A stretch of 64,000 nt of DNA, taken from NCBI GenBank assembly GCA_964247055.1, contig OZ176051.1, positions 1,302,001 through 1,366,000 on the forward strand, in the 5' to 3' direction. The position numbers and the translations under genes were made by a program. Each line of letters starts with the position of its first letter. The stretch's first letter is position 1. The DNA is from Paragordius varius (Eukaryota; Animalia; Nematomorpha). Below the pieces are notes generated by a model. That model was given only the letters and a program-made list of their open reading frames with translations. It ran no database searches and had not been told where the DNA came from. Below are positions 1-64,000 of this stretch, piece after piece.

Positions 1-185
1 TGAAAACTGCTATAAATTCATTGCTAATCAAATTATTTGAACAGTCTACGGATGTAACCACAGAACTTACAAATGTAAATCTTATCGATGATTCGACTGA
101 AATTTCTTCCAGAAAATTTAACAGTTGGTGGCTTTTTACAGAATGTTATTTCAATAATCCGTTGTATACCATGAATATGCATTAA
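1..185 (+). CDS. 3' end of the partner 184-codon ORF from the preceding unit
   Basis: Encodes ...KTAINSL...RKFNSWWLFTECYFNNPLYTMNMH*, matching the other copies. Confidence 0.75.
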   Translation, partial: KTAINSLLIKLFEQSTDVTTELTNVNLIDDSTEISSRKFNSWWLFTECYFNNPLYTMNMH

Positions 186-206
186 GTGATATTTTCTGGA
201 TTTTTT

Positions 207-237
207 AATAAAACAATTACTAAACACAACATTTATT
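207..237. terminator. Opposed polyadenylation signals between the convergent stops (repeated at every unit junction)
   Basis: AATAAA on + at 207-212. AATAAA on - at 237-232 overlaps the ADAMTS TAA. The stop codons are only 50 bp apart. Confidence 0.55.
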
Positions 238-2592
238 ATTTACAAGGGCACGGTCTAGAAACCAAAGGTTTTTGTCTATATCGAGAACAGATGCTATCAT
301 CAATAAAATCTTTTAGCGACGGGTCTTTGACACAAAAAACTGACCGATACTGTAATGTTGGGCTGAAATATAGAGAGGATTCATTTTTCGAATGGTATGA
401 TGAAAAAGTTGTATTAACGTCTTTTGTTGTTTCGCGGCAGAAACAAGGTTGCCAGTATCCTAACCACCAAAAAGGGAGACAAGTAAAATTATTGCATTTT
501 CGGGATAAAGTTGCTTTAGGTTTTGGTTGAGGACAAAGTTTATCACTCACTTTGAGTCCAGATATGGAATTGGCACAAAAATAAGCCTTATTTTGTGTGC
601 CCATTTTGTTGTTATTAGAATTTTCAAAACTACATTTTTTATTGCATGGACTCCAATCAGTTAATGCCCAGATGTATGATGTGTTGGTGGGATCATTGGA
701 ATTTAAACTTTTGTTTGGCTTTACAGATTTGTGATAATAGTTGACAGATATATTGATCGAAACATTTAACTGAGTAATAAGAACATAAACGATCATATCT
801 TTTTCGAGTGGACCCACGATTGAAATTAATTCTTGATGACTTTTTTTGGTTGAAGTATAGTTATAAACTACGGCTTTTACTGCTGATGAGGTTTTTACCC
901 TATGTACCCCAAACCAGGTGATTGTTAAATTGCCATTAAGCATATATTCAGCATCCTGTGCATAAGTCAGAGCTAAATAATTAGCATTCTCACTCATTTC
1001 TTGAACGGTTATTTGTGTTGCATCTTTTGGAATGGTTGCTACACTCAAATACGAGCTTGCATTGTTCTCCAAAAAACTATCCTCAACCTGACTCGTGTTA
1101 AGAAAAACATAATTTTCCACTTTTTTGCAATTTTTATTGCCTCCATCACAGATGAGACAATTATCTTTCTTAGCTCGGCTCTCGAGTCTTCGATCGCAAG
1201 CTATCGGATGACAACGCCCTTCTATACAAACACCATCTATAAACAAACGAATCATTGAGATAAAAAGAAATAGTTATTAGGTTTAAAGAGTTTCCTATTA
1301 TCTATTTTGATTAAAACTGGCGGAGTTCAAGATAATCGTTTATTTTACTTATGCACCGTTTACTCGATTAAAAAAATATATTTTTAACCAATATTTGTAA
1401 TGTATTTGCAAAATAACTTTTACTTACTGTATTCGATATCACTTTTAATTTCTAGTGGCGTGTGTTCGAAATTAACACTACCCATATTACACAAAGTCCC
1501 ATCTCGTAAACTGTGAGCATATGAATCGATCATTTCTAAGCTAACATTTTTCGTAATATTTGGATGTGAAATTAAACTTTGCGATTCATTTAGTTTTTCT
1601 TCGTTTGGCACGGATGATTGATATTCCGATTGAATATTTTTGCAGTTTAAATGACAGGCAGGTGCGCCATACATAATGGTTTGATAGTCAAAAATCCAAG
1701 TAGAATTGCATATTCCTTTAATTTTACATCCATACTCCTGACATTGGTAATTGGGATTGTATTCGTCTTAAATATATTGCAATTGATAATGAATTAACAA
1801 TAAAAATGGAAACTATACGGACAAAATATAAAAATATAAAGACATAATTTTTTTCAAAAGACAACCATGCTTTTTAAACCTAAATTTATCCTAAAAAAAG
1901 CATTTAATTAAATCGTAAAATAAATAATTGACTGTGTTACCAATTTACATTTCTATATTATACTTTATAGTTTAAAACAATAAATTCTATTTTAAAAAAA
2001 TCAAGATTAAAAAAGTATGGTTGTTTTTTTCAAAAAAATATTTGTCTTATTTTCACGTTTTGTCCGTATAATTGCAATTTTTACTTTAAAGCTGTTGATA
2101 TAAAAATGTTTTGCCAGTCCAAAATAACACTTTTGAAAATTTTATATTTTTATACTATATATAAGTTGAATTAAACATCAAATATAAAAATATAGATTAT
2201 AATATATTTCGATTCATCAGATACAAATTTATTGTCGACCCTAAAAATAATAATATCATTATTTAAGAATTCAGGTTATTTCCCTTGCAAAGTGCTTATG
2301 AGCCTTAATATACGACAATTCCCCTATTCCAACTCTAATCTGAACGAAAATTTATTACTTTTAATAGGATTAACGTATGGTGCAAAATAAAAATATCTGT
2401 TTTTTTAAAATAATATTTAGATAAAAAAATTAACTTTTATTATTTATTATGTTTGCATAATATTACCTTCATACTCATTTTCTTTCTTACAATCCCTTAA
2501 GTTGCAAGTTTTATAGCGAGTTTTTCGACCAACACAAAAGGTCCCATCGTTTGTCGGACTTTATTAATTTATAAGACATTAAAACTTCAAAT

Positions 2593-2857
2593 ATACCATT
2601 TACAGAAATTCACCTTCAAACAATTCAAATTCATTCTAAAATTAAAAAAATACCTATATTTTTTAAATTTTTTTTTAAAAAAAAAGTTTAAAATTAATAT
2701 AAACTGAAAAAAATAATAAACTATGTCATAAGATAATTTTCTCATTTATGATGAGTTATATTAGCCCGATAACACATAATTTATTTTCAGGGTGAATTTG
2801 AATTGTTCAAGGGTGAATTTAAAATGTTTTAGGGTAAATTTGAATTGTAAATGGTAT
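2593..2857. mobile_element. MITE family A (TACCATTTAC...GTAAATGGTA, TA TSD, subterminal ~20-bp repeats), ADAMTS intron 6, U1
   Basis: Inverted termini plus repeated aattcaaattcaccc / gggtgaatttgaatt. Empty site at 63355-63356 in U7. Confidence 0.78.
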
Positions 2858-3802
2858 ATTACAAATTCTGATCATACAAAAAGCATATCAAAAAAATTGA
2901 TTTTTTATTACATATTGTTTTAAGATATTTTTATCGAAATATTACTTTGTACATTAGAGGCCCTTAAATTGGAAATTATTGTAAATATAAAAATACCATA
3001 TTAATCAAATTAGAAAACATAAATGATAAAAAAATTATCACCAAAACAATTTATCTTAATTTTCCTAAACCATAAATAATTTACGTGGGATTATCACATG
3101 CCCGAGTTGATTTGGAAAGACCTATACCACAAGATTTACTACACGGAGTCCAAGGGCCCCAATGTCCCCAATTACCTATTTGCTGGAAAGTTTTATCATT
3201 AAGGCGTCTGAGATTTTGAGTTACTGCAATACATTCCTTGTTATAACACCATTTATTAACTCCACAATAGGTCCCATCCTCAACCATTTTCATTTTACTG
3301 ATGCATTTACCATTCACTTTACACCAGAGTGTACCACTGCATATATCCTGTTTTAGTTATCAATCAAAAGTGAGAAATTTTGAGCAAATTTACAGATAAT
3401 TAAGCGGTAATATTTCATATTATTTTATGTTATGTAAAATATTGCTAGTCATTTTTAACTCATAATCAAAATTATGAATTATATCAGACCTAAAATCTTT
3501 TAAAATACTATAATATATTTGATATAAAATATAAGGGTTTTTAGTAATCTACTCTTGTAATTTAGCTTTATATTTGTAAATATTCATAATTGTGTTAAAA
3601 TTAAATTATGTACAAATAATATATATATTAATGAGTATATCTCTAAAATAGGAGTTATCTAAACAACAAAATTTAAATTAAGAGAAAAATAAATTACCAC
3701 CTTTTGGGACAAAATAATCAATTATCATAATAATTATGACCTATAAATTAATCAAATAAAAATTGAAATATGAAAGGCTTATATCTGTGGACGAACTTTG
3801 AG

Positions 3803-4798
3803 TCTGTATATTTATAAAAATGGAAAATGCTGGCTGTGTGATCTGTTTCCCGAAAACCGGTGGACCCATTCAAATCCAAATATCGAAATAATTTTTAATG
3901 AATGCCTTGACAATAGCTTCGCCCCTTTTTGTAGGGCCCCGGTTTGGGTCAACCCCGTGTAAAAAACGGGTTTTTTAAAAAACATGTCCACAAAAACCGT
4001 GTCTTTGAGAAAATTTTCCGGAAAACTTGTTGGACTATTCGATTTTAAATAAAATTTTTTTTACTTATTTTCGATTGCGCCGAACATAGTCGGCTGGCTT
4101 TTTTAATTTAGGCCCGTTTTTTCTCGCTCACCCCGTAAAATGCCATTTTTTTCAAAAAACAAAGTCCACAAAAATAATTTTTTGATTTTATTTTTCGATT
4201 AAGGTATGAGACCGTTAAAATTCAATATAACCATGTATTCCCTCTTAAAAGGCAAAAAATTTAGTCAAGAGTTTCTATCATGATAGCTGCTGGGTAGGAA
4301 ACTACCTGCGAAAAACTGATTCGTCATATCGAAATAGCGTGCTTTTGGGGCTAAATTTCAGAAAACCTATGAGGCCATATGGGTTTAATAGCTGCTCAAA
4401 GTATTACTCTTAAAAAGTCAAAAATTTTAGTCGAGCGGATTTTTCGAATTAGCTGTTAAATAGGCCCTTTGCTCTCTAAAAAATGCGCTATCATTGAACT
4501 ATTATTTAGTTTTGAAGCCATTTTTCCATAAACTATTAGGAATGAATCATGATTCCAGGTATAAAGGCAAAAGTACTAACTACATTTTTATATTGTCCTC
4601 TTAGTATGGGGCTACCCGCCTACAACTGCGCCATCATATCGATACAGCATGCCTTTGGCAAATTTCAGATTATGAGACCATCTGAATCATTTTCGTGCCG
4701 CATAACATTGCTTATAAAATCGAAAATGCCCCCCCCCCCCCCCCCCAGAAGTCCGAAGGACTTACTCGGGCTGCGTAGCAGCACTAGATTTACGCTAG
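3803..4798 (+). mobile_element. Non-autonomous Helitron in ADAMTS intron 5, U1
   Basis: 5' TC, 3' hairpin plus CTAG|T, no TSD. Empty site gaactttgaa|tattc in U2 and U4. Confidence 0.82.
4729..4746. repeat. C18 homopolymer inside the Helitron 3' region (also about 23223, 44280, 54308)
   Basis: Direct reading; the length varies between copies. Confidence 0.9.
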
Positions 4799-6836
4799 TA
4801 CTCATATATATATAAATCAAATTTATCTTTTTAAGTCAGAAATATTAATCTATACTTCTATACCGGGACAGTATGTGGTATTTCGTAATCCCATGTTCAA
4901 TCGGCATTGGTGATCTAGGTTGTATTGTGTTCCCAAAAAATCGGTGGCTATTTTGGCTTGCAAAACTTGATCGTACGGTTTTAAGTGGAAAATAGTAAAG
5001 TTTCGATAGATATCTTGAAATATTGAAGGCGTATTTATAGAGTCTAGGGTTACATTTTTTAAGATAAGATTTAATTTTTTTTCTTGTCCATTCACAGTTT
5101 TCAAATGTTGAATCAAATGTTGGGACAAATTTTTTTAATAAGTTTCTGTGTCGATGACTGTCACGTATTGAATAAAGGGTTCAATATATAATAACATTGA
5201 CTCCTTTTCTATAATAGTTTTTGGTGGATGGGAGGAGGACATATTTTCGCTATTTGCCTTTAAACAATCTGCATTTTGTTTTTGAATGAAACCGGTTAAC
5301 TCTTGGTAACTACAGTTGGACCATATAAGATCGGCCTCTAAACTTTGGGGTAACTGAGAATCCATAATGTATGGCATTTTTTTGGATTCATTATTTTGCT
5401 TTTTTTGACTTCGATTAACATTGTGCCTTAAACAAAATTCCATTGTATCATGTTTCATACCTAATCTAACAACAACAATAGATGTAAATAATTTTTTTCA
5501 AAAAAAATAATTTCAGTTAAGACCGATAAATGCAAAAAGGTTAATTTTTGATTTATTATTTTGGATGTCATATTTTACAATAAAACTTTTGTTGTAGATA
5601 AATTATTTTTTGTTATAAAGTATTAAATCAGCATTTAATATTGTCATGAAATAAATCCTATGTTTGGATACACAACAACTACTTTATTTATATTCATAAA
5701 GTGGTTTTTCCTAAAAACGCAAAATTATCTTAGAAAGATCATCTCTTAGTCATTTAGACTGGGATTCCTGAAGTAAAATACAGAATTTTTGCCCTTTGTA
5801 TTTAAAGTATTTGGTATTTTCTTAAGCATCTTGTTAATTTTCTTTTGCTCAAAAATATTCCCCCCCCCCTCCAAAATATTTATTTCCTATCTCAAGTTTA
5901 AATAAAGTAAAAAAAGGAAATAATGTGTACAAATGTCCGATTTCATGTGCAATGGTGAATGCTGTGCTTAGTCCAGTATCTTCTGCAATGACACAACTCC
6001 TCCCATTCTGACAAATGGAACCGACTTCGGCCATCCCTAAAGTATTACAAGGCGTGTAATTTTGAGCGCATAAATCTAATCTAGTACAAATTATGCAACA
6101 TATTTAAGAATGTGAAATCAACTTTTCATTTATTGAACAAACATTTTTTAAAATATAATTGTTCAGTTTATTTACCGCATTTCTATGTTAAAATTGCAAA
6201 AAATAATTCTATGAAGGAAAAAATACTTTGTTAACATGATGGCCACATGATAAGATGGAACCAACTGACTTTTATTGAATAATGTGTATTGCCAAGCACA
6301 GAAGCTTTTTAAGTAATCATCAGCATTGATTGTCATATTAACGGATTTAGGCTAAATGTTATACAATTTAAACTCTGATTATAAAATAATTTTAATAAAA
6401 AATTTAAAAATTACGATTGTCTTCAAATGTATCATAGAGTTCCATTCTATGGTAAGAGGGAATCCAAAACTTAAACGTTTAAATATGGAATCAACCTTTA
6501 TGTATAAATAATGTTCATTTCATAAAAATATTAATCGAAATAAAAAAACCAAAACCAGAATGGATTTAGGAAAGTTGGAATTGTTTATGTTATATAAAAA
6601 CTAAAAATTTACCGGAGTATATGTAGATATTAACTCACCGAATGCATCAAAGTATATATGTAAGCTTCAACATCATAGTTTTTGTAATGCAAAACAAAAG
6701 ATTGTTCAGTAAAAACTATGGCTTTGATTATCATCGCCTCTAACATTGTGGATGTGATGTGGGACGCTGAATCTTCTGTAATAGAATTAGCGTAGATTAT
6801 ATAAAAACATTGCAAACTAAAAAGCAGAAATTGCAT

Positions 6837-7167: not shown

Positions 7168-7348
7168 ATGGAAACAGGTAATAATGAAATGGGGAATGAA
7201 CAAAAAAGACCTCCGATCCTACCTCCCCCATATAAGGAAGAAATTGAAGCTCAAGCTCCAAAGTTGGAAAACAATAATGGAGCCATTATATATCCAAATA
7301 CTACCCAATTAATAACGCAAAATCAAACATCGGCTGCCTTTCAGAATG
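7168..7348 (+). CDS. Partner gene exon 1 (Pro-rich, PPPY), U1; downstream exons damaged
   Basis: METGNNEMGNEQKRPPILPPPYKEEIE...FQN G|gt. The exon-2 acceptor is deleted in this unit. Confidence 0.55.
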
Positions 7349-9852: not shown

Positions 9853-10408
9853 ATGAGTTTTGACAATTTAACATTGGTCGCGTTGAGTTCAATACCGTAT
9901 TGGTATGGGGTAGGGGAGGTGAAATATTGTTTTTATGAAAAAAGACATTACAAATATTCACTTCAACAATATTATTCATGGCGCCCAGATACTTTGGAAT
10001 GGGAAAGAATTGTTTTAACCGAAGATCAGCTGATGAAAAAAATTGAACCCTTTTATAGTCATTATATTTTACATATAAAATAGACAGAAATTAGAGAAAT
10101 CATATACAGTAATAGTTATAAGGAACACGATTATTCAAATGTTGATGGTAATGATGATAGGAATAAAGTTGCAAACATCATAAAAGAATATGTTGAAAAA
10201 TACAAAGCCATGCAGATATGAATTGAAAACTGCTATAAGTTCATTGCCAATCAAATTATTTGAACAGTCTACGGATGTAACCACAGAACTTACAAATGTA
10301 ATTCTTATCGATGATTCGACTGAAATTTCTTTCAGAAAATTTAACAGTTGGTGGCTTTTTACAGAATGTTATTTCAATAATCCGTTGTATACCATGAATA
10401 TGCATTAA
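9853..10408 (+). pseudogene. Partner terminal ORF, U1, disrupted
   Basis: TAT>TAG at 10081-10083 and a small deletion near 10215 split the ORF that has 184 codons in other units. Confidence 0.8.
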
Positions 10409-10458: not shown

Positions 10459-13400
10459 TTATTTACAAGGGCACAATCTAGAAACCAAAGGTTTTTGTCT
10501 ATATCGAGAACATATGCTATCATCAATTAAATCTTTTAACGAGGGGTCTTTAACACAAAAAACTGACCGATACTGTAATGTTGGGCTGAAATATAGAGAG
10601 GATTCGTTTTTCGAATGGTATGATGGAATAGTTGTATTAGCTTCCTTTGTTGTTTCGCGGCAGAAACAAGGTTGCCAGTATCCTAACCACCAAAATGGGA
10701 GACAAGTAAAATTATTGCATTTTCGGGATAAAGTTGCTTTGGGTTTTGGTTGAGGACAAAGTTTATCGCTCACTTTGAGTCCAGATATGGAATTGGCACA
10801 AAAATAAGCCTTACTTTGTGTGCCACCCCATTTGTTGTTATTAGAATTTTCAAAAGTACATTTTTTATTGCATGGACTCCAATCAGTTAATGTCCAGGCG
10901 TATGATGCGTTGGTTGGATCATTGTAATTTAAACTTATGTTTGACTTTACAGATTTGTGATAATAGGTGATAGATATATTGATCGAAACATTTAACTGAG
11001 TAATAATAACATTAACGATCAGATCTTTTTCGAGTGGACCCAAGATAGAAATAAATTCTTGCTGACTTTTTTCAGTTGAAGTATAGTTATAAACTACGGC
11101 TTTTACAGCTGATGAGGTTTTTACCCTATGCACCCCAAACCAGGTGATTGTTAAATTGCCATTAAGCATATATTCGGCATCCTGTGCATAAGTCAGCGCT
11201 AGTTAATTAGCATTCTCACTCATTTCTTGAATGGTTATTTGTGTTGCATCTTTTGGAATGGTTGCTACACTCAAATACGAGCTTGCATTGTTCTCCAAAA
11301 AACTATTCTCAACTTGACTTGTGTTTAGAAAAACATAATTTTCCACTTTTTTGCAATTTTTATTGCGTCCATCACAGATGAGACAATTATCTTTCTTAGC
11401 TCGGCTCTCGAGTCGTCGATCGCAAGCTATCGGATGACAACGCCCTTCTATACAAACACCATCTATATATATAAAACAAACGAATTATTTAAGATAAAAA
11501 AATAATAATAAGCTTAAAGAGTTTCCTATTATCCAGCTTTTGTCAAATAAAACTGTCAGAGTTCAAGATAATCGTTTATTTTACTTATGCACCGTTTACC
11601 CCATAAAAAAATAGTATTTTTAATCAATATTTGTAATATAATTGCAAAATAACTTTTACTTACTGTATTCGATATCATTTTTAATATCTAGTGGCGTGTG
11701 TTCAAAACTAGCAATGTCCATATTACACAATGTCCCATCTCGTAAACTGTGAGCGTAGGAATCAATCATTTCTAAGCTAACATTTTTCGTAATATTTGGA
11801 TGTGAAATTAAACTTTGAGATTCATTTAGTTTTTCCTGGTTTGGCACGGATGATTGATATTGCGATTGAATATTTTTGCAGTTTAAATGACAGGCAGGCG
11901 CGCCATACATGATGGTTTGATAGTCAAAAATCCAAGTTGAATTGCATATTCCTTTAACTTTACATCCATACTCCTGGCATTGGTAATTGGGATTGTATTC
12001 TGCTTAAATATATTGTAATTGATTATGAGTTAATTACAGTAAAAATGGAAATTTTACGGACAAAATGTAACAATATATAGACAATTTTTTTTAAAAAATC
12101 AAGATGGAAAAAGTATGGTTGTTTTTTAGAAAAAAATATTTGTCTTATTTTCACGTTTTGTCCGTTTAATTTCAATTTTTACTGTAAAGCTGTTGATATA
12201 AAAATGTTTTGCCAGAGTTCCAATAATAACACTTCTGATTATAATAATGTTTTTATACAATTATATATAAGTTGAATTTAGCACCAAATAAGAAAAATAT
12301 AGATTATGATATATTTCAATGCCATTAGATACAAATTTATCGTTTACCCTAAATATAATATTATCAATATTTTGAGAATTTAGGTTATTCCCTTCTTGCA
12401 AAGTGCTAGGATGCGCTTTAATATACGACAATTCCCCTATTCCGACTCTAATCTGAACGAAAATTAATTACTTTTAATATGATTAACGTATTGTGCAAAA
12501 TATAAATATCTGTTTTTTTTTCAATAATATTTACCTAAAAAAACTTAACTTTTATTAATTATTATGTTTTCATAATATTACCTTCATACTCATTTTCTTT
12601 CTTACAATCCCTTAAGTTGCATGTTTTATAGCGGGTTTTTCGACCAACACAAAAGGTCCCATCGTTTGTCGGACTTTATTAATTTATTAGATATGATACA
12701 ATATAACTTCAAATATACCATTTGCAGTTCAAATTCACCCTTAAGCAATTCAAATTCACCCTGTTTTTTAAGATTAAAAATTACCTATATTTTTTTATAT
12801 TTTTTAAAAATGGAATTTCGTTTAAAATTAATATAATACTGAAAAATATAAGCCACAAAGATACATTTTATATTGATAATGAGTTATATTTTCAGAAGAC
12901 ATAATTCATTTTTAGGGTGAATTTGAATTGTTCGGGGGTGAATTTGAATTTCAAATGGTATATTACTAATTCTGATTATAGAAAAAGAGTATATTATAAA
13001 AATTGATTCTTTATTACACATTGGTTATATGATATTTTTAATCGATATATTACTTTGTATATTAGAGGCCCTTAATTCGGAAATTATAGTAAAATATAAA
13101 AATACCATATTAATAAAACATAAATGGTAAATAAATTATCATCAAAACAATTTATCTTAATTTTCTTAAACCATAAATAAATTACATGGGATTATCACAT
13201 GCCCGAGTTGATTTGGAAAGACCTATACCGCAAGATTTACTACACGGAGGCCAAGGGCCCCAATGTCCCCAATTACCAATTTGTTGGAAAGTTTTATCAT
13301 TAAGTTGTCTGAGATTCTGAGTTACTGCAATACATTCCTTGTTGTAACACCATTTATTAACTCCACAATAGGTGCCATCCTCAACCATTTTCATTTTACT

Positions 13401-39064: not shown

Positions 39065-39124
39065 ATTTTAAAAATTTACTGTTAATATATAATTTGATAA
39101 GAACGTATTTACTATTTTAGAATT

Positions 39125-42120: not shown

Positions 42121-42413
42121 AATGTACCATTTACAGTTCAAATTCACCCTTGAACAATTCAAATTCACCCTTAAACCATTCAAATTCACTCTCAAACATT
42201 TTAAATTCCCCCTAAAATAAATTATTTGTTTTTAAAGATTAAAATGCCTGTATTTTTTTATATTTTCTAAAAATAGATTTTTATTTTAAATTATAATACT
42301 GGAAAATAATAAAATAAGCCACAAAGATACATTTTATATTGATAATGAGTTATAATTGCCCGAAAACACATAATTCATTTTTAGGGTCAAGGGTGAATTG
42401 TAAATGGTATATT
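42121..42413. mobile_element. MITE family A, ADAMTS intron 6, U5
   Basis: Same family; the left arm has an expanded number of 21-bp repeats. Confidence 0.72.
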
Positions 42414-49853: not shown

Positions 49854-50856
49854 TTATTTACAAGGGCACGGTCTAGACACCAACGGTTTTTGTCTATATC
49901 GAGAACAAACGCTATCATCAATTAAATCTTTTAGCGAGGGGTCTTTAACACAAAAAACTGACCGATACTGTAATGTTGGGCTTAAATAGAAAGAGGATTC
50001 ATTTTTCGAATGGTATGAAGGAAAAGTTGTATTAGCGTCTTTTGTTATTTCGCGGCAGAAACAAGGTTGCCAGTATCCTAACCACCAATAAGGGAGGCAA
50101 GTAAAATTATTGCATTTTCGGGATAAAACAGCTTTAGGTTTTGGTTGAGGACAAAGTTTATCGCTCACTTTGAGTCCAGATATGGAATTGGCACAAAAAT
50201 AAGCCTTATTTTGTGTGCCACCCCATTTGTTGTTATTAGAATGCTCAAAACTACATTTTTTATTGCATGGACTCCAATCAGTTAATGCCCAGATGTATGA
50301 TGCGTTGGTGGGATCATTGGAATTTAAACTTATGTTTGACTTTACAGATTTGTGATAATAGGTGATAGATATATTGATCGAAACATTTAACTGAGTAATA
50401 AGAACATAAACGATCAGATCTTTTTCGAGTGGACCCAGGATAGAAATAAATTCTTGCTGACTTTTTTCAGTGGAAGTATAGTTATAAACTACGGATTTTA
50501 CAGCTGATGAGGTTTTTACCCTATGCACCCCAAACCAGGTGATTGTAAAATTGCCATTAAGCATATATTGGGCATCGTGTGCATAAGCCAGAGCTAGATA
50601 ATTAGCATTCTCACTCATTTCTTGAATGGTTATTTGTGTTGCATCTTTTGGAATGGTTGCTACACTCAAATACGAGCTTGCATTGTTCTTCAAAAAACTA
50701 TCCTCAACTTGACTCGTGTTAAGAAAAACATAATTTTCCACTTTTTTGCAATTTTTATTGCGTCCATCACAGATGAGACAATTATCTTTCTTAGCGCGGC
50801 TCTCGAGTCGTCGATCGCAAGCTATCGGATGACAACGCCCTTCTATACAAACCCCA

Positions 50857-50914
<58 letters not shown>

Positions 50915-53900
50915 AAAACATCATTTAAGATAAAAAGAAATATTAATAAGCTTAAATACTTTCCTAATATCTAGCTTTTGTCAAATACAAACTGGCGGAC
51001 TTCGAAAAAATCGTTTATTTAATCTTTCCCTGTTTACCGATTAAGAAAAATATAGTTTAACCAATATTTGTAATATATTTGCCAAGTAACTTTTACTCAC
51101 TGTATTCGATTTCACTTTTAATTTCTAGTGGTGAGTTTTTAAAACTAGCACCCCCCATATTACGCAATGTCCCATCTCGTAAACTGTGAGCATATGAATC
51201 AATCATTTCTAAGCTAACATTTTTCGTAATATTTGGATGTGAAATTACACTTTGCGATTCATTGAGTTTTTCCTCGTTTAGCACGGATGATTGATATTCC
51301 GATTGAATATTTTTGCAGTTTAAATGACAGGCAGGGGCGCCATACATGATGGTTTGATAGTCAAAAATCCAAGTTGAATTGCATATTCCTTTAACTTTAC
51401 ATCCATACTCCTGGCATTGGTAATTAGGATTGTATTCTGATTAAATATATTGGAATTCATTATGAATTAATTACAGTAAAAATGTAAATTATACGGACAA
51501 AATGTAAAAATATAAAGACAAATTTTTTTTTAAAAAATCAAGATTAAAAAAGTATGGTTGTTTTTTTTTCAAAAAAATATTTGTCTAATTCGTTTCATAT
51601 AATTTTATTTTTTACTGTTGTTGATAAAAATATGCTTTGCCAGAGTTCCTATATAATAACAATTTGAAAATTATAATTATAGGTTTTTATACATTTACAT
51701 ATAAGTCGAATTAAGCACCAAATAAAAATATAGATTATAATATATTTCAATGCCATCAACACAAATTTATCGTTGATCCTAAAAATAATATTATCAATAT
51801 TTGAGAATTCAGGTTATTCTTTCTTGCAGAGTGCTTAGATGCGACTTAATATACGACAAATTCCATATTTAGACTCTAATCTAAACGAAAATTTATTACG
51901 TTTAATATGATAAACTTATTGTGCAAAGCCTTTCCCATACAAACGACATAAAGATATCTGTTTTTTTAAATAATATTTACATAAAAATACTTAACTTTTA
52001 TTAATTATAATGTTTTCATAATATTACCTTCATACTCATTTTCTTTCTTACAATCCCTTAAGTTGCATGTTTTATAGCGGGTTTTTCGACCAACACAAAA
52101 GCTTCCATCGTTTGTCGGACTTTAATAATTTATTAGATATGATAAAATATAACTTCAGATATACCATTTACAGTTCAAATTCACCCTTAAACAATTCAAA
52201 TTCACCCTTGAATTTAACTTCAAATGTACCATTTACAGTTCAAATTCATTGTAAAATTAAAATTAAAAATTACCTATATTTTTTTTGATTTTTAAAAAAT
52301 GAAATTTCGTTTAAAATTAATATAAATACTAAAAAAATAATAAACTATGCCATAAGATATATTTTTTATTGATAATATAATTTCCCGAAAACACGTAATT
52401 CATTTTTAGGGTGAATTCAAATTGTTCGAGGGTGAATTTGTTTTAAATGGTATTTTACTAATTCTGATTATAGAATAAAGAGCATATCAAAAAAATTGAT
52501 TCTTTATTACATATTGGTTATAAGATAATTTTAATCAAAAACTTTTTACATAAAACTAAATACCTTAATTTGGAAATTATTGTAAAATATAAAATACCAT
52601 ATTAATCAAATTTGAACATATAAATGATAAATAAATTATCATTTGATCAAAACAATTTCATTTATCTAAATTTTCCTAAACCAAAAAAAAAATTACATGG
52701 GATTATCACATGCACGAGCTGATTTGGAAAGACCTATACCGCAAGATTTACTACACGGAGTCCAAGGGCCCCAATGTCCCCAATTTCCTATTTGCTGGAA
52801 AGTTTTATCATTAAGGCGTCTGAGATTCAGAGTTACTGAAATACATTCCTTGTTGTAACACCATTTATTAACTCCACAATAGGTTCCATCCTCAACCATT
52901 TTCAATTTACTGATGCATTTACCATTCACTTTACACCAGAGTGTACCACTGCATATATCCTGTTTTCGTTATCAATCAAAAGTGAGAAAATTTTACAAAA
53001 ACGGTAATATTTCATATTATTTTATGTTTTGTAAAATATTACTGATCATTTTTAACTATAAAAATCACACCGTAAAATTTTTTAGAATACTATAATATAT
53101 TTGATATAAAATTTTAGTGTCTTTTGAAATCTAGTCTTGTTAGTTAGTTATGTATGTATTTGTAAATATTTCATTGTGTTAAAATTAAATTTTGTACAAA
53201 TAAAATATATATTATTGAGTATATCTCTAAAATAAGAGTTATCTAAACAACAAAATTTAAATTAACAGAAAATAAATTACCACCTTTTGGGACAAAAAAA
53301 TCAATTATCATAATAATTATGACCTATGAATTAAATTAATTAAAAATGAAATATGTAAGGCTTATATCTGTGGACGAACTTTGAGTCTATATATTTATAA
53401 AAATGGAAAATGCTGGCTTTGTGATCTGTTTCCGGAAAACCGGTGGACCCATTCAAATCCAAATATCGAAATAATTATTAATGAATGCCCCGACAATGGC
53501 TTCGCCTTTTTTGAATTAGGGCCCCAGTTCGGGTCCACCCCGTGTAAAAAACGGGTTTTTTTTGAAAATCTGTCCTTAAAAATCGTGTATTTGAGACAAT
53601 TTTCCGGAAAACTTGTTGGACTATTTGATTTCAAATATAATTTTTTTTACTTATTTTTGATTGCGCCGAACATAGTCGGCTCGTTTTTTTAATTTAGGCC
53701 GTTTTTTTACCCGCTCCCCCCGTAAAATGCCATTTTTTTTCCACAAAAATAATTTTTTGATTTTATTTTTCGACCAAGGTATGAGACCGTTAAAATTCAA
53801 TAACGCCATGTATTCCCTGTGAAAAGGCAAAAAATTTATTTAAGCTTTTTCTTTCATGATAGCCGCTGGGTAGGAAACTACCTGCGAAAAACTGACCCGT

Positions 53901-56332
53901 CAAATCAAAATAGTGTGCTTTGGGGCTAAATTTCAGAAAACCTATGAGGCCATATGAGTTTAATAGTTGCTTAAAGTATTACCCGTAAAAAGTCAAAAAT
54001 TTTATTCGAGCGGATTTTTCGAATTAGCTGTTAAATAGGTCCTTTGATCTCCAAAATAATGCGCTATCATTGAACTATTATTTATTTTTGAAGCCATTTT
54101 TCCATAAACTATTAGGAATAAATCATGATTCCAGGTATAAAGGCAATTACTAACTACATTTTTATAATGGCCTCTTAGTATGGGGCTACCCGCCTACAAC
54201 TGCGCATCATATCGATACAGCATGCCTTTGACAAATTTCAGAATATGAGACCATCTGAATCATTTTGAAACTTCGTGCCGCATAACATTGCTTATAAAAT
54301 CGAAAATCCCCCCCCCCCCACCCAGAAGTCCGAAGGACTTACTCGGGCTGCGTAGCAGCACGAGATTTACACTAGTATTCATATATATATATATAAATAA
54401 AATTTATATATTTAGTAGGAAATATTAATATATACTTCTATACCGGGACAGTAAGTGGTATTTCGCAGCCCCATGTTTAATTGGCATTGGTGATCTAGGT
54501 TGTATTGTGTTCCCAAAAAATCGGTGGCTATTTTGGCTTGCAAAACTGGATCGTACGGTTTAAAGTGTAAAATAGTAAAGTTTCGATAGGTATTTTGAAA
54601 TATTGAAGGTGTATATATGGAGTCTAGGGTTACATTTTTTATGATATGATTTAAAATTTTTTCTTGTTTCTTCACAGTTTTCAAATGTAGAATTAAATGT
54701 TGGGACAAATTTTGTTCATAAGTCTCTGTGTCGATGACTGTCACGTATTGAGTAAATGGTTCAATGTATAATAACATTGACTCCTTTTCTATAATAGTTT
54801 TTAGTGGATGGGATGACAAATTTTCGCTATTTGTCTTTAAACAATCTGCATTTTGTTTTTGAATGAAACCGGTTAACTCTTGATAACTACAGTTGGACCA
54901 TATAAGATCGGCCTCTAAACTTTGGGGTAACTGAGAATCCATAATGGATGGCAGTTTTTTGGATTCATTATTTTCCTTTTGTTGAATTCGATTATTAACA
55001 TTGTGCCTTAAACAAAATTCCATTGTATCATGTTTCATACCTAATCTAACAACCACAATAGATGGGCAATATACAAATTTCAAAAAAAATAAATTTCAGT
55101 TAAGACCGATAAATGCAAAAACTCATATTTTACAAAAACTTTTGTTTTAGATAAATTATTTTTTGTTAGCAAGTATTAAAACCGCATGTAATATCAATTT
55201 CAAAACCATGAAATAAATCCTATGCTTATAAAATGTTTTTTACCATTCCTAAATACATTTATAGCAAAATAACATCTTAAAAAGATAATCTTTTAGTCAT
55301 TTAGACTGGGATACCTGAAGTAAAATACAGCATTTTTACCCTGTATATATAAAGCTTTAAGTATTTTCTTAAGCATTTTAATAATTTTCTTTTGCTTAAA
55401 AATATTCCCCCAAAATATTTTTTTCCTATCTAAAGTTTAAAATCAAGTAAAAAAGAAGGAATAATGTACAAATGTCCGAGTTCATGTGCAATAGTGAATG
55501 CTGTGCTTAGTCCAGTATCTTCTGCAATAACACAACTTCTGCCATTCTGACATATGGAACCGACTTCGGCCATTCCCAAAGTATTACAAGGCGTGTAATT
55601 CTGAGCGCATAAATCTAATCTGGTAAAAATGATTTATTAAACGAACTTATTTTTTAAAATATAATTGTTCAGTTTATTTACCTCATTTCTAAAAGTTTTA
55701 ATTGCAAAAAAAAATACTTTGTTAGCATGATGGCCACATGATAAGATGAAACCAATTGACTTTCATTGAATAATGTGTATTGCCAAGCACAGAAGCTTTT
55801 TAAGTAATCATCAGCATTGATTGTCATATTAACGGATTTAGGCTTAATTATATACAATTATTGATTATAAAAAAAATTATTAAAAAAATTAAAAAATTTA
55901 AAAATTACAATTGTCTTCAAATGTATCATAGAGTTCCATTCTATGGTGAGAGGAAATCCGAAACTCTCACGTTTAAATATGGAGTTAACCTTAATATATA
56001 AATTATGTTCATTTCATAAAAATATTAATGGGAATAAAAAAAGTTAACCAAAACCAGAATGGATTTAGAAAGGTTATTGTTTATAAAATTAAAAAACGAA
56101 AAATTTACCGGAGTATATGTAGATATTGACTTACCGAATGCATCAAAGTATATATGTAAGCTTCAACATCATAGTTTTTGTAATGCAAAACAAAAGATTG
56201 ATCAGTAAAAACTATGGCTTTAATTATCATCACCTCTAACATTGTGGATGTGATGTGGGACGCTGAATCTTCTGTAATAGAATTTGCATAGATTAGATAA
56301 AAACATTGCAAACTCAAAATCAGAAAATGCAT
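49854..56332 (-). CDS. ADAMTS-family metalloprotease, copy U6, intact, 952 aa
   Basis: Exons 56135-56332, 55909-55989, 55718-55842, 55470-55619, 54436-55045, 52697-52959, 52028-52119, 51101-51436 and 49854-50857 sum to 2859 nt (953 codons including stop). All phases are compatible. The zinc motif is HELGHLLGMKHD. Confidence 0.92.
50859..50914. repeat. (TA)n microsatellite abutting the last-exon splice acceptor of ADAMTS U6
   Basis: About 28 TA units with one G. The other units have 1-5 units here. Confidence 0.95.
52159..52453. mobile_element. MITE family A, ADAMTS intron 6, U6
   Basis: Same family; the left terminus (taccatttacagttcaaattca) is duplicated. Confidence 0.7.
53386..54375 (+). 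mobile_element. Non-autonomous Helitron, U6
   Basis: Same termini and position as in U1 and U5. Confidence 0.85.
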
Positions 56333-56665: not shown

Positions 56666-56928
56666 ATGGAAACAGATAATAATGAAATGGGGAATGAACA
56701 AAAAGGTCCTCCTCCGGTCTTACCTCCCCCATATAAGGAAACCCAAGCTCCAATGTTGGAAAACAATAATGGAGCCATTATATATCCAAATACTACCCAA
56801 TTAATAACGCAAAATCAAACATCGGCTGCTTTTCAGAATGGTTATTTAAAATAAAATAATATTTTTTTGCAGGATACCATCATCATGGCATTCCTCAACC
56901 CGTTTTTTATCCGCCACATCCACCTGTG
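56666..56928 (+). CDS. Partner gene exons 1-2, U6
   Basis: METDNNEMGNEQKGPPPVLPPPYKE... plus cag|GYHHHGIPQPVFYPPHPPV|gt. Confidence 0.6.
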
Positions 56929-59900
56929 GTTATTTTTTTTTATTTTTGAATAAAAAATATATAAAATGTCTTTTTTATATGGTAAAAAGATTGTCCACAA
57001 ATGTTATAACGGTAAATCAACTAAACTAATTATTTCAATTTTATTAATTAATGCATTTGCATACATTTTATTATGTTTGTTTTTGATTCTGGTTGGTTTA
57101 AATAATTTATAACATATACATTTTTCTTTGAAGGTTTTTGGCATTTAAGCATGGCTATTCTAGAACATGAAATATATGTTAACTTAGCTAATGTAAAATA
57201 AAATCAATAAAAAAGTGACGCCTTCGTTCACTATGTTTTTTTGTATTCTAAGGACGATATTCAATATTGCGCAATTATTCTTTTAGTATGGGTCAAACAC
57301 CAGATGTAATTATTAAATTAATTATTTATTATTTTTATCAACATTTTTATAAAACATAAATTTTTTTATAAAAACTCAAATATTTAAAATTGATGTTAAA
57401 GTATTTCCAGAATATTTCCTATAAAGAATGATCAGAAAAAAGATATGAAATTACCCTTTTTTACGCCTAGATATCTTTGAAATATGTATATCATTGGTTA
57501 TTATTTTGTAATGTGTGATTATAATTTTGTAAACGCATAATTTGATTTCTAAAGTTTAACTTTATAAACCTACTAATTTGATTAATATTACTGATTTATA
57601 GAATATCGTGGTCGAGATGATGAGTTTAGAGTTTTTTTGAATTTACAAATTTACTAAAATATGATGAACTTTAGTTTGAATCCCAATAACCAATTATGGC
57701 TTGATAATTTAAAGTAACGACAGCTATTATTGACCATTTTGGTATTTAAATCGTCTAGAAAGGGAATTAATTTTCATGTCTCTCTTTAGCATATAAGATT
57801 TTTTATTTTATTAGTTAAATATTTACCTCTCTAAATATCCGATAATAAGAAATAAGTTATTGAATCATTTATTTTGCCTTTACAAAAAATTTTTTTATGG
57901 CTTTTATTAGATTTGCTATTCAATCATCTCGACTAGGTCACAGAAACGCGAGATGTCGCTTATCATTTTCGCTAAAATAAAACGATTTTTATAAAGTTAA
58001 TATTTAAAATATTTTAACCAATATTGGGAGAAAAATGATACAACACTTTTGAAAACTTGATATAAATTAACGTTCGAACTATAAAATCATCTTTAGGAAA
58101 TAAAAAAAATATTAATATCTTGCATTTCAATTTTGCGTGAATAATTGGTTCCAATAGGCAAAATTTTTTTAAATAATATTTTTTATGAGCATTTTTTTAT
58201 TATTTTGTAGCAACACATTTTGATGGTTGACGCGGTTGCTCAAAGGCCTCCAACCACAACAGTAAGAAATTTTAGTTACCGGGCTCAATATTTAGAAAAA
58301 TCCATAATATTAAATAAGTTACGTGTCACTGAGTTTGAAAAACTCAATAAATGCATATTGTATTGATTGCTTATCTTTGCGTGCCTTATTATTAATTATG
58401 GATAAAAATGATTAAAATAATTTCCGTAAAATTCGAATCGGGTGGCAAAAAAATGTTACACTTATAAGCAAAAGACCTGACTTAAGTGTTTTTTTATCAC
58501 CGATCTAAAGTTGCTCAACTTCCCACGCTTGACTTAGAAGTCAAGTGCCACTTTTTTATCATGCCACCCAATGTATGCACAGTTAAACATTTAGGATGGT
58601 GAAGATAGCGAGGAGCATCTTGACCTGCTAAAATTGCTGGACAAATTTAATAGTGATGAAAAAACAACCACAACAAGTTAGCATACATTTTTTATCCAGA
58701 TAAATTATTTGATAAAATGTTATAAATAAAGGATATGCAAGATAAATTGGTGGAAAAACATTTTAAATTTTGTCAGGAGCAAGAAGATGAAACTGAGCCA
58801 GAAAAGCTAAGAGTTTCCAATGAATCTAAAATTAATAACTTAATGGAGGATTTAGTTAATATTAACAATTCTTTGCATTTATTAAGTGATCAATAAATAT
58901 AATTTACTTTATATACTTTTTTAAATAATTAGCATCAATGTAATAAATTCTAAAATTATTATTGTTATTAGCAAAAACTTATTTGTTAAACTTCTAAAAA
59001 TAGAAAGAATTTAACTTTTGAAATGTTTGCCTCACTATTCTGTTTGTGTGTAAGAGTCCGTCATTGGATTTATGAATCTATAATAATTCAATAAGATACA
59101 TTTGATTGTGCATTCAATAGAATTTCTTTTTGATTACTCAGATCTTGTAAAATATTGTTGGCTATATGACTTGTTTCATGAGAAACTTGTAAAGATTTAT
59201 ACAAAGGCGCATCTGTCCCTACAAGTAACTTATCCAAGTAAAATGAATCGCTGTTTCAATTACATTATGGTTTACAGTTGTATTTTATCACATTATGCGC
59301 AATCGAGCCTTAAGACTTTTATATTTAATATTTAAGATATTCTAAAAAATTATGCATTTTTTGCCTTTAAGACTTATAATTATTTTTTCTTAATTTTATA
59401 AAAATTTTCTTCATCTCAAATCAATTATCAATTAGTGGCTCTGGTTAAACCGCGGTAATAAAAATTTAACAATCCATTTATATTAAATTTTCCGGTTTTT
59501 ATGGTGAAGCAGGCGCTTTTTTAAAATAATATTGTTTTCTGAGAATTTTTTTCCCGATAGAGCTTTGATTAAAACAGACCCATATCTAGACCAATTATAG
59601 TTTTATCCGAATAATTAACATCATATTAAATATTCTTTTCATCTATTAGTTTAATTTTAGATATGTGGCTTTGTCATTTTATTCATGAGTCGAAGGCTAT
59701 GAACAAATCACTTAGAAATTTTATCAATAGAACAGGATGGCATAGAGAAATTTTAGATTATGGCAATGATTGTATTAAAATTCAATATCTATAATCAATA
59801 TATTAACATGCGAAAGGTGGTTACAACGAATGTTTTTTAATATTTTTAACATAATCTACACAGATTGATAAACTTTGCTATTGCTAGATTAGTAAGTTTT

Positions 59901-60356: not shown

Positions 60357-60911
60357 ATGAGTTTTAACAATTTAACATTGGTCGCGTTAACTTCAATACC
60401 GTATTGGTATGGGGTAGGGGAGGTGAAATATTGTTTTTATGAAAAAAGACATTACAAATATTCACTTCAACAATATTATTCATGGCGCCCAGATACTTTG
60501 GAATGGGAAAGAATTGTTTTAACCGAAGATCAGCTGACGAAAAAAATTGAACCCTTTTATAGTCATTATATATTACATATAAAATATCCAGAAATTAGAG
60601 AAATCATATACAGTAATAGTTATAAGGAACAAGATTATTCAAATGTTAATGGTAATGATAGGAATAAAGTTGCAAACATCATTAAAGAATATGTTGAAAA
60701 ATACAAAGCCATGCAGAATAATCAATTGAAAACTGCTATAAATTCATTGCCAATCAAATTATTTGAACAGTCTACGGATGTAACCAGAGATCTTACAAAT
60801 GTAGATCTTATCGATGATTCGACTGAAATTTTTTCCAGAAAATTTAACAGTTGGTGGCTTTTTACAGAATGTTATTTCAATAATCCGTTGTATACCATGA
60901 ATATGCATTAA
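60357..60911 (+). CDS. Partner terminal ORF/exon (184 codons), U6
   Basis: Intact ORF homologous to the other copies. Confidence 0.78.
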   Translation: MSFNNLTLVALTSIPYWYGVGEVKYCFYEKRHYKYSLQQYYSWRPDTLEWERIVLTEDQLTKKIEPFYSHYILHIKYPEIREIIYSNSYKEQDYSNVNGNDRNKVANIIKEYVEKYKAMQNNQLKTAINSLPIKLFEQSTDVTRDLTNVDLIDDSTEIFSRKFNSWWLFTECYFNNPLYTMNMH

Positions 60912-60961
60912 AAAATATTTTTAGGATTTTTCAATAAAACAATTACTAAACACAACATTTA

Positions 60962-63843
60962 TTATTTACAAGGGCACGGTCTAGAAACCAAAGGTTTTTG
61001 TTTATATCGAGAACATATGCTATCATCAATTAAATCTTTTAGCGATGGGTCTTGAACACAAAAAACTGACCGATACTGTAATGTTGGGCTTAAATATAGA
61101 GAGAATTCGTTTTTCGAATGGGGTGATGGAAAAATTGTATTAGCGTCCTTTGTTGTTTCGCGGCAGAAACAAGGTTGCCAGTATCCTAACCACCAAAAAG
61201 GAAGACAAGTAAAATTATTGCAGTTTCGGGATAAAGTTGCTTTAGGTTTTGGTTGAGGACAAAGTTTATCGCTTACTTTAAGTCCAGATATGGAATTGGC
61301 ACAAAAATAAGCCTTATTTTATGTGCCACCCCATTTGTTGTTATTAGAATTTTCAAAACTACATTTTTTATTGCATGGACTCCAATCAGTTAATGTCCAG
61401 GCGTATGATGCGTTGGTGGGATCATTGGAATTTAAACTTATGTTTGACTTTACAGATTTGTGATAATAGGTGACAGATATATTGATCGAAACATTTAACT
61501 GAGTAATAAGAACATAAACAATCAGATCTTTTTCGAGTAGACCCACAATGGAAATAAATTCTTGTTGACTTTTTTCAGTTGAGGTATAGTTACAAACTAC
61601 GGCTTTTACAGCTGATGAACTTTTTACCCTATGCACCCCAAACCAGGTGATTGTTAAATTGCCATTAAGCATATATTCGGCATCCTGTGCATAAGTGAGA
61701 GCTAAATAATTAGCATTCTCACTCATTTCTTGAATGGTTATTTGTGTTGCATCTCTTGGAATGGTTGCTACACTCAAATACGAGCTTGCATTGTTCTCCA
61801 AAAAACTATCCTCAACTTGACTCGTGTTAAGAAAAACATAATTTTCCACTTTTTTGCAATTTTTATTGCCTCCATCACAGATGAGACAATTATCTTTCTT
61901 AGCTCGGCTCTCGAGTCGTCGATCGCAAGCTATGGGATGACACCGCCCTTCTATACAAACACCATCTATATATACAAAACAAACGAATCATTTAAGATAA
62001 AAAGAAATATTAATAAGGTTAAAGACTTTCCTAATATCTAGCTTTTGTTAAATAAAACTGGCGGAGTTCAAGATAATCGTTTATTTTACTTATGCTTCGT
62101 TTACCCGATTAAAAAATATATTTTTAACCAATATTTGTAATATATTTGCCAAGTAACTTTTACTTACCGTATTCGATATCATTTTTAATTTCTAGTGGTG
62201 TGTATTCAAATCTAGCACTTCCCATATTACACAAATTCCCATCTCGTAAACTGTGAGCATAGGAATCAATCATTTCTAAGCTAACATTTTTCGTAATATT
62301 TGGATGTGAAATTAAACTTTGTGATTCATTTAGTTTTTCCTCGTTTGGCACGGATGATTGATATTCCGATTGAATATTTTTGCAGTTTAAATGACAGGCA
62401 GGGGCGCCATACATGATGGTTTGATAGTCAAAAATCCAAGTAGAATTGCACATTCCTTTAACTTTACATCCATACTCCTGGCATTGGTAATTAGGATTGT
62501 ATTCAGCTTAAATAGATTTAAATTGATTATGAAATAATTACAGTAAAAATTGGAATTATACGGATAAAATGCAAAAATATAAAGACTTTTTTTTTCAAAA
62601 GACAACCATACTTTTTTAAACCTTAATTTATCCTATAAAAAACATTTAATTACAATCGTAAAATGCATAATTGATTGTGTCACCAATTTACATTTCTATA
62701 ATATACTTTGCAGTTTAAAACGATGAGTTCTATTTAAAAAAATCAAGATTAAAAAGTATGGTTGTCTTTTACAAATAAGTTTTTGTTTAATTTTCACGTT
62801 TTGTCCGTATAATTTCAATTTTTACTGTAAAGCTTTTGATATAAAAATGTTTTGCCAGAGTTCCAATAATAACACTTCTGAAAATTATAATAATGTTTTT
62901 ATACAATTATATATAAGTTAAATTAAGCACCAAATAAGAAAAAATTTTAATATATTTCAATGCCATCAGATACAAATTTATCGTTGACCCTAATATTATT
63001 AATATTTTGAGAATTCAGGTTTTATTTCCTTCTTGCAAAGTTAGATGGCCATAATATACGACAATTCCCCTATTTAGACTCTAATCCGAACGAATATTCA
63101 TTCCTTTTAATATTATTAACTTATGGTGCAAAGCCCTTATACAAACAACATAAAGATATCTGTTTTTTTTTCAATAATATTTACATAAAAAAACTTAACT
63201 TTTACTAATTTTATGTTTGCATAATATTACCTTCATACTCATTTTCTTTCTTACAATCCCTTAAGTTGCACGTTTTATAGCGGGTTTTTCGACCAACACA
63301 AAAGGTCCCGTCGTTTGTCGGACTTTATTATTTATAAGATATTATAACTTCAAATATTATAAATTCTGATCAAAGAATAAAGGTTATATTAAAAAATTGA
63401 TTCTTTATTACACATTGGTTTTAGGATATTTTTAATCGAAATATTCCTTTGTACATTAGAGGCCCTTAATTTGGAAATTATTGTAAAATATAAAAATACC
63501 ATAATTTACAAAATATAAATGATAAATAAATTATCATCAAAACGATTTATCTTTATTTTCCTAAACCATAAATAAATTACATGGGATTATCACATGCCCG
63601 AGTTGATTTGGAAAGACCTATACCGCAAGATTTACTACACGGAGTCCAAGGGCCCCAATGTCCCCAATTTCCTATTTGCTGGAAAGTTTTATCATTAAGT
63701 TGTCTGACAGTCTGAGTTACTGCAATACATTCCTTATTGTAACACCATTTATTAACTCCACAATAGGTGCCATCCTCAACCATTTTCATTTTACTGATGC
63801 ATTTACCATTCACTTTACACCAGAGTGTACCACTACATATATC
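60962..63843 (-). pseudogene. ADAMTS-family metalloprotease, copy U7; only the last four exons are in the window; nonsense mutation
   Basis: Exons 6-9 are recognisable. CAA>TAA at 61319-61321 (WGGT*) in the last exon. Confidence 0.85.
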
Positions 63844-64000
63844 TTGTTTTTATCAATCAAAAGTGAGATTTGATATATATATATTGTAAAATTTTGAGAA
63901 AATTTACAGAACGGTATATTATTTTATGTTTTGTAAAATATTACTGATCAATTTTAACTCATAATCAAAATTATGAATTATATCGCACCGTAAAATTTTT

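Follow-up and report, generated by a model that had tools for sequence, protein, structure and literature searches.

Organization of the array

The stretch of DNA considered here, referred to as the window, comprises 64,000 nucleotides of the hairworm Paragordius varius (contig OZ176051.1 of assembly GCA_964247055.1, denoted C2; the window is C2:1302001-1366000) and lies in a tandem array built around a gene of the ADAMTS protease type. The assembly amounts to 110.6 Mb in 44 contigs with approximately 28% G+C. A direct repeat spans the window in seven in-register copies with a spacing of 8966-11108 bp, and in the families listed the copies are 81-97% identical to the reference copy. Genome-wide there are 12 units, each 9-12 kb long and placed head-to-tail, that form an array of approximately 124-128 kb; six whole units and parts of two others fall in the window. 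When one unit was compared by BLAST with 164 kb including both flanks, the array was found to extend from C2:1300710 to approximately C2:1428700. A whole-genome search recovered each of the three long open reading frames (ORFs) of the unit 12 times, from C2:1301631 to approximately C2:1424900 and in a single strand arrangement, with no further copies outside the array. Array sequence is also present in DNA runs from two studies. A sequence-only reading of the window had proposed a cassette co-duplicated at least seven times, and this is confirmed by the seven copies in the window and the 12 units in the genome.

Each unit carries a nine-exon ADAMTS-type gene on the minus strand, an ORF of 184 codons (ORF184) on the plus strand and, also on the plus strand, the first exons of a gene encoding a PPxY motif (the PPxY gene). 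The start codons of the PPxY gene and the ADAMTS-type gene are 337 bp apart (36576 vs 36239), and the stop of ORF184 is 50 bp from the stop of the ADAMTS-type gene (39679 vs 39730). The sequence-only reading had described one minus-strand ADAMTS and one plus-strand partner per unit, approximately 330 bp head-to-head and approximately 50 bp tail-to-tail. The ADAMTS and both distances stand, but the “partner” merged the start of the PPxY gene with ORF184, and the two distances belong to two different plus-strand features. The head-to-head spacer is probably a shared two-way promoter.

Structure of the ADAMTS-type gene

The exon model was derived on unit 6, and similarity searches were run exon by exon. 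All introns of the model are GT-AG and the phases of its nine exons fit. E1 encodes a methionine followed by a hydrophobic stretch of approximately 15 residues that resembles a signal peptide (Kyte-Doolittle 2.2 over 11 residues, a heuristic measure) and continues almost directly into the first strand of the catalytic domain, the rest of which is encoded by E1b, E2 and E3. The zinc motif HELGHLLGMKHD spans the E3/E4 junction and matches HEXXHXBGBXHD, and the Met-turn SIMD follows in E4. A thrombospondin repeat (TSR) with WGPW and CSKSCG is encoded by E5 and E5b, the second half of the repeat being on E5b, while E6 and E7 encode the Cys-rich end, the spacer and two TSR-like repeats.

Exon-wise matches in Pfam were ADAMTS_spacer1 (4e-17), ADAMTS_CR_2 (1.5e-7), TSP_1 (2.8e-6) and Reprolysin_3 (3e-5), those to ADAMTS_CR_2 and TSP_1 falling on E5. 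ADAMTS_CR_3 scored 0.003, which is under its cut-off, and E6 alone had no Pfam match. Among PDB chains, the catalytic domains of ADAMTS-4, ADAMTS-5 and ADAMTS-1 matched at 1e-13 to 3e-12, E5 matched chains of ADAMTS13 and ADAMTS-5, and a Cys-rich/spacer chain of ADAMTS-5 matched at 4e-8. A word search with E7 gave no match, a result that is limited by length and uninformative on longer relatives.

Neither Pep_M12B_propep nor any other pro-peptide family of Pfam matched E1. On an ADAMTS-5 chain that contains the catalytic domain only, E2 aligns to residues 63-84 and E3, in colinear order, to residues 106-151. Because there is no pro-peptide match, because the catalytic domain begins approximately 15 residues after the predicted signal peptide, and because the ATG of the neighbouring gene is just 337 bp away, the gene is predicted to have no pro-domain; the same claim made by the sequence-only reading is borne out and holds on the present exon model. 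Pro-domains of ADAMTSs may chaperone folding and secretion, and that of ADAMTS13 is unusually short (PMC4448532). No paper on an ADAMTS without a pro-domain was found with the phrases used in the literature search. In addition, E4 encodes an insert of approximately 110 residues between the catalytic and disintegrin-like modules (window 54510-54840, codons ~73-182). The insert had no match to anything searched, is open in eight of the 12 copies, and may be a new module of this ADAMTS variant.

The array gene shares with canonical ADAMTSs (human ADAMTS-4, -5 and -13; PMC4448532) a signal peptide, a reprolysin-type catalytic domain with HEXXHXBGBXHD and a Met-turn, a disintegrin-like module, a central TSR with WxxW and CSxxCG, a Cys-rich end, a spacer and C-terminal TSR-like repeats. 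It differs from them by the absence of a pro-domain, by the constrained insert and by its position in a 12-copy tandem array. As judged from this predicted architecture, the array protease is an ADAMTS-derived variant and not a canonical member of the family.

Several introns of the gene carry repeats. A (TA)n microsatellite (window 50860-50912), longest in unit 6, abuts the acceptor AG of E7, the final exon. The large intron of several units contains a repeated element (window 43270-43800 and 53340-53900) whose open frames are of type FLHGVDPNWGPNSKK, and this element occurs twice more in the right flank of the array (L009:264-1700). A repeat unit of the GGTGAATTTGAACTGTAAATGGTATA type recurs in the intron directly upstream of E5b.

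State of the copies and selection on the protease

The exons of each copy were joined by a local script that returned length, frame and first stop. Five of the 12 ADAMTS copies are fully open (units 3, 6, 10, 11 and 12), with 951-953 codons from ATG to TAA and canonical splice sites. The other seven are broken by one to three lesions per copy, each of them different; unit 8 has two 1-nt indels and unit 9 a stop in E4, and the lesions of the copies in the window are listed in Table 1. The statement of the sequence-only reading that intact ORFs of both genes persist is correct for five units in the case of the ADAMTS-type gene and for eight in the case of ORF184.

In introns, mean pairwise divergence between units is 0.10-0.15; ADAMTS exons diverge less, at 0.035-0.068. 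Synonymous divergence of the ADAMTS-type gene is 0.136, the level of the introns, and the ratio of non-synonymous to synonymous divergence (dN/dS) is 0.21. The ratio was also estimated by event counts (omega), in which changes are scored against the majority base and the expectation is taken from the intron mutation spectrum. Omega per exon is 0.06-0.46 (P 0.02 down to 3e-13), and in E4 and E7, the two largest exons, five stop-creating changes were observed against 27 expected. The highest sub-regions are the E4 insert and the C-terminal repeats, with omega of approximately 0.46, and none nears 1. The ADAMTS copies are under purifying selection and not under the diversifying selection that had been suggested for them. 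Changes private to single copies are laxer than those shared between copies (omega ~0.39 vs 0.20).

Of 13 loci with an ADAMTS spacer that could be detected in the genome, 12 are inside the array and one is outside. A single M12B pro-peptide exon was detected genome-wide, exon-wise detection being weak. With nearly all spacer loci in one place and the copies kept under selection, the array is a local and probably lineage-specific amplification of a metzincin gene whose product is predicted to be secreted, as the sequence-only reading had suggested.

The sets of units that share in-frame indels are mutually incompatible, e.g. units 2, 3, 6 and 8 vs units 3, 5, 6 and 10, and distances in exons and short introns are about equal whichever two units are compared. 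Because of these two observations, it is likely that the units exchange sequence. A young clade of units 2, 4, 5, 8 and 9, which have only broken ADAMTS copies, was seen in a distance matrix of whole units; it is missing from exons and short introns and is not relied on here.

The orphan reading frame ORF184

ORF184 is a single exon with its own ATG and is open in eight of the 12 units. Six lesions (three stops and three frameshifts) were counted among the copies, and three more indels are in frame; in-frame deletions of 3 nt occur in open copies. Per kb, lesions are approximately three times as frequent as in the ADAMTS-type gene (six in 6.6 kb vs 11 in 34 kb). ORF184 is the best-conserved part of the unit, with a divergence of 0.032 (0.026-0.046 per 100-nt window) compared with 0.10-0.15 in the introns. 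The edges of this conserved island fit the reading frame: the island starts within approximately 100 nt of the ATG, and divergence drops sharply at the ATG itself. Indels are approximately eight times rarer than in introns (six per 552 nt, three of them in frame, vs ~0.09 per nt), and private changes accumulate at 43% of the intron rate, just as they do in ADAMTS exons.

Several features are those of a gene. An open frame of 184 codons would arise by chance with a probability of approximately 1e-4 per unit in DNA of approximately 30% G+C, and of the six frames at this position, frame 0 has the best coding base periodicity. Stop-creating changes number three against 7.3 expected (P = 0.06). Omega is approximately 0.3 for older shared changes, 0.57 in open copies and 1.0 in broken copies, the numbers behind each class being small. 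An AATAAA located approximately 24 nt past the stop is invariant in all 12 units, and a TATATAA and an acceptor-like ttttag just before the ATG are kept in the 12 units, the TATATAA of unit 12 differing by one base. From these patterns we infer that ORF184 probably does encode a protein, as a lineage-restricted gene under a weaker constraint of its own.

No family could be assigned to the product. ORF184 belongs to no Pfam family, has no match in a word search or in the atlas, and has no similarity to M12B pro-peptides. A full HMMER search found no relative among 1.84 billion representative proteins; because ORF184 did not retrieve itself, the library evidently does not include the present genome, and absence from other hairworms is not implied. 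AlphaFold returned a mean confidence (predicted local distance difference test, pLDDT) of 33 for ORF184 and of 32 for the true ADAMTS exon E4 with an equally shallow alignment, so the low value is void as an argument. The N-terminus has a weak hydrophobic stretch (Kyte-Doolittle 1.5 over 11 residues) and no charged n-region.

The word AWCAGCTGWT occurs twice in the window (10025-10034 and 39297-39306) where 0.24 occurrences are expected. Both are at the same place in copies of ORF184, and there are none in the ADAMTS exons of the window.

The PPxY gene

Exon 1 of the PPxY gene is 181 nt long and encodes a PPPY motif. It is followed by a 32-nt GT-AG intron, found at the same place in other units, and by a proline-rich exon 2 of 53 nt. 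A third exon of 53-57 nt is conserved in four of the 12 units (6, 10, 11 and 12) and is deleted or replaced by repeats in the other eight. Omega of exon 1 is 0.47 in its own frame and approximately 1 in the two other frames. Exon 1 had no Pfam match. A LITAF-type zinc ribbon was considered as the identity of the gene and rejected, there being no match near the array. The PPxY gene is decaying in most units.

In the units of the window, ORF184 begins approximately 2.3-3.4 kb past the first two exons of the PPxY gene, and the DNA between them is rich in repeats and poorly conserved. Two segments located between the PPxY exons and ORF184 (window 36805-37709 and 38615-39157) are high-copy repeats: in three DNA runs, their contig depth is 50-150 times that of the flanks. 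The second adjoins the conserved 5' side of ORF184. The GGTGAATTTGAACTGTAAATGGTATA-type unit of these repeats is the one that recurs upstream of E5b.

Origin of the array and relation of its genes

The best reading of the locus, to which we give a probability of roughly 0.55, is a lineage-specific tandem array in which the neighbours were passively co-duplicated with the protease. A compact block of approximately 10 kb would have been amplified to 12 head-to-tail copies, presumably by unequal crossing-over, and the copies would have kept exchanging sequence. The gene under the clearest selection is that of the ADAMTS-type zinc protease, predicted to be secreted and active, which appears to have lost its pro-domain and to have gained the insert between its catalytic and disintegrin-like modules. 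The plus-strand neighbours may have been copied along as they lie inside the smallest block that carries the protease gene with its promoter and its 3' end; with spacers of merely 337 bp and 50 bp, co-copying of both would follow. That the neighbours are carried passively is indicated by the loss of PPxY exon 3 in eight of the 12 units, and the null hypothesis of hitch-hiking named in the sequence-only reading stands. Moreover, units with an open ADAMTS copy are not preferentially those with an open ORF184, and the two have not been retained together: both are open in four units, the ADAMTS-type gene alone in one, ORF184 alone in four and neither in three.

Families of secreted proteases in tandem are known from parasites and other animals, where head-to-tail amplification, a mixture of intact and dead copies, purifying selection and exchange between copies are found together. 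The present array shares all four properties, and it is a lineage-specific gene-family expansion of this familiar kind. It differs by two features that its unit adds, one of which, an orphan ORF, is better conserved than any other part of the unit. What is unusual here is the ADAMTS variant with a constrained orphan neighbour.

Several observations weigh against the reading of a selected protease with passive, coding neighbours. Hitch-hiking accounts for the co-duplication of ORF184 and not for its eight open copies. No RNA run was found to contain the stretch: the runs that do are identified as DNA because introns and spacers are evenly covered and splice joints are absent. A small run that was guessed to be RNA has nothing of the stretch in it. 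In the ADAMTS-type gene, the omega of private changes is alike in open and broken copies, and because it is approximately 0.37 in the latter, either the lesions arose very recently or the signal is blurred by exchange between copies. For ORF184, the signal at the protein level is weak: omega ranges from 0.45 (Nei-Gojobori) to 0.60 (event counts, P = 0.02), so that the dN/dS check suggested for the partner finds constraint and a value that is not near 1, but only weak constraint. Variable sites are distributed almost evenly over the three codon positions (30/23/31), and omega is 0.65 in frame +1. Synonymous divergence is 0.055, far from the 0.136 of the ADAMTS-type gene, with a non-synonymous divergence of 0.025, and variants found in more than one copy are a third as frequent as in ADAMTS exons. 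Since both synonymous and shared changes are few, plain protein-coding constraint falls short as an explanation; either the segment was homogenised more recently than the rest of the unit or an additional constraint acts on it at the DNA or RNA level.

These properties of ORF184 are the starting point for the alternative that survives best, although it is unlikely. It holds that ORF184 is not, or is no longer, coding, and that the conserved island is a non-coding element, for example a regulatory or RNA element where the two 3' ends converge, in which the frame is a relic. The joint slowing of synonymous and non-synonymous sites, the flat distribution over codon positions and the closeness of omega in frames 0 and +1 would all be expected of such an element, and the lack of relatives among the representative proteins, the low recognition by a language model and the lack of a confident fold have the same tendency. 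The last of these carries no weight, given that a true ADAMTS exon folded just as badly. Against a relic, a frame of this length is improbable by chance, the island begins close to the ATG with a sharp drop in divergence there, in-frame 3-nt deletions are tolerated in open copies, and frame 0 leads in coding periodicity. The order of omega from shared changes through open to broken copies, small as the numbers are, fits a real gene with dead copies.

A second alternative, improbable and ranking behind the first, is that the two plus-strand features are one four-exon gene, with PPxY exons 1 to 3 and ORF184 as the last exon, a chimera made by the duplication. Because ORF184 precedes the PPxY exons within the unit, this gene would have to run from one unit into the next. 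If exon 3 is spliced at its candidate donor (CAGAT/GTAATT), it joins the ttttag located 4 nt before the ATG of ORF184 in frame, GTAATT is used as a donor by ADAMTS exons here too, all three junctions that keep exon 3 lead into an open ORF184, and exon 1 is constrained in its own frame and not in the two others. However, the frame fit has a 1-in-3 chance of being accidental, an in-frame TAA closes exon 3 at the position of the candidate donor, and a direct join of exon 2 to ORF184 is out of frame. In the last unit, PPxY exons are present and no ORF184 lies beyond them. Two separate genes are favoured because five copies of ORF184 are open behind units that lack exon 3, which is gone from eight of the 12. 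A related proposal, that the edges of the array cut between the PPxY exons and ORF184 and that the partner is a chimera by necessity, was dropped after a BLAST search with the right flank. This search indicated that units 6, 10 and 11 keep 0.4-1.7 kb more homology, including exon 3, and that the unit taken as reference for placing the edges simply has a deletion or repeat insertion at that place.

The functional module put forward by the sequence-only reading is a third alternative and is doubtful. It states that the product of ORF184 folds, inhibits or escorts the pro-domain-less ADAMTS and that the pair was amplified and kept as a unit. ORF184 is indeed constrained, open in most units and found solely inside the array in the whole-genome search, and the protease would be deprived of a domain that in ADAMTSs may chaperone folding and secretion (PMC4448532). 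The module is nevertheless not supported, as open copies of the two genes are not co-retained and PPxY exon 3 has been lost in eight of the 12 units. The N-terminal stretch of ORF184 is weakly hydrophobic compared with the ADAMTS signal peptide (1.5 vs 2.2), which makes entry into the secretory path doubtful. ORF184 also resembles neither M12B pro-peptides nor any other family, and close spacing suffices to explain the co-duplication. Least probable among the alternatives is the recruitment of ORF184, as a young gene of this lineage, into the role of a folding helper or latency factor that replaces the lost pro-domain, the pair being co-amplified for invasion or remodelling of host tissue, a proposal that includes the variant in which duplication itself made a new four-exon gene across unit junctions.

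The array can be of use for several questions. It contains almost all spacer-bearing ADAMTS genes of the genome, and five of its copies are intact, divergent and, on the exon model, without a pro-domain. The intact copies are candidates for secreted enzymes in host penetration or tissue remodelling. They could also provide a natural test of whether an ADAMTS folds and is controlled without its pro-domain. ORF184 offers a clean case of an orphan gene, with 12 paralogues available for study within a single genome.

Features of the window and its surroundings

Table 1. Array features in the 64,000-nt window; coordinates are window positions, and E denotes exons of the ADAMTS-type gene.
Feature	Position	Strand	Remarks
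Unit 1 ORF184, 3' part	1..185	+	Copy begins 369 nt before the window; TAG at codon 116
Unit 1 ADAMTS-type gene	236..6836	-	9 exons; TAA at codon 110 of E4
Unit 1 PPxY exon 1	7168..7348	+	Exon 2 missed by BLAST
Unit 2 ORF184	9853..10408	+	Broken: TAG at codon 77, 2-nt deletion
Unit 2 ADAMTS-type gene	10459..16020	-	Broken: start is ATA; TAA at codon 86 of E7
Unit 3 ORF184	18819..19373	+	Open, 184 codons
Unit 3 ADAMTS-type gene	19425..25532	-	Fully open, 952 codons, splice sites all GT-AG
Unit 4 ORF184	28525..29079	+	Open
Unit 4 ADAMTS-type gene	29131..36239	-	Broken: 127-nt insertion in E4, TAA in E7, 1-nt deletion in E5b
Head-to-head spacer between ADAMTS and PPxY start codons	36240..36575		Divergence between copies 0.073 vs 0.10-0.15 in introns
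Unit 4 PPxY gene	36576..36841	+	Exon 1 36576-36756, GT-AG intron 36757-36788 (32 nt), exon 2 36789-36841
Unit 5 ORF184	39125..39679	+	Open
Tail-to-tail spacer, 50 bp	39680..39729		Poly(A)-signal-like hexamers on both strands
Unit 5 ADAMTS-type gene	39730..46396	-	Broken: 1-nt insertion in E7
Unit 6 ORF184	49253..49806	+	Broken: TAA at codon 42, 1-nt deletion
Unit 6 ADAMTS-type gene, reference model	49854..56332	-	Fully open; stop 49854-49856
Unit 6 ADAMTS exons E7-E5	E7 49857-50857, E6 51101-51436, E5b 52028-52119, E5 52697-52959	-	
Unit 6 ADAMTS exons E4-E1	E4 54436-55045, E3 55470-55619, E2 55718-55842, E1b 55909-55989, E1 56135-56332	-	
Unit 6 PPxY gene	56666..57308	+	Exon 1 56666-56840, exon 2 56876-56928
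Unit 6 PPxY candidate exon 3	57253-57305 or to TAA at 57308	+	The window's only copy of exon 3
Unit 7 ORF184	60357..60911	+	Open
Unit 7 ADAMTS-type gene, 3' part (E7 to E5)	60962..64000	-	TAA at codon 215 of E7; remainder past the window

The array is also present, at 96-98% identity (window 35900-41300), in a run that bears the label of another species; this distance does not exceed that among the copies of the array itself. The run comes either from a very close relative or reflects a difference in labelling.

The left flank of the array is a convergent CCDC28/VTI1 pair, and the right flank is a minus-strand LYPLA-like gene. VTI1 is on the minus strand, and the array begins approximately 200 bp from its SNARE-motif exon (region L002:8150-9630, equivalent to C2:1300150-1301630). 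N-terminal exons of VTI1 were not found between this exon and the array or its first ORF184 copy, and the array might sit within, or directly against, the 5' part of VTI1.

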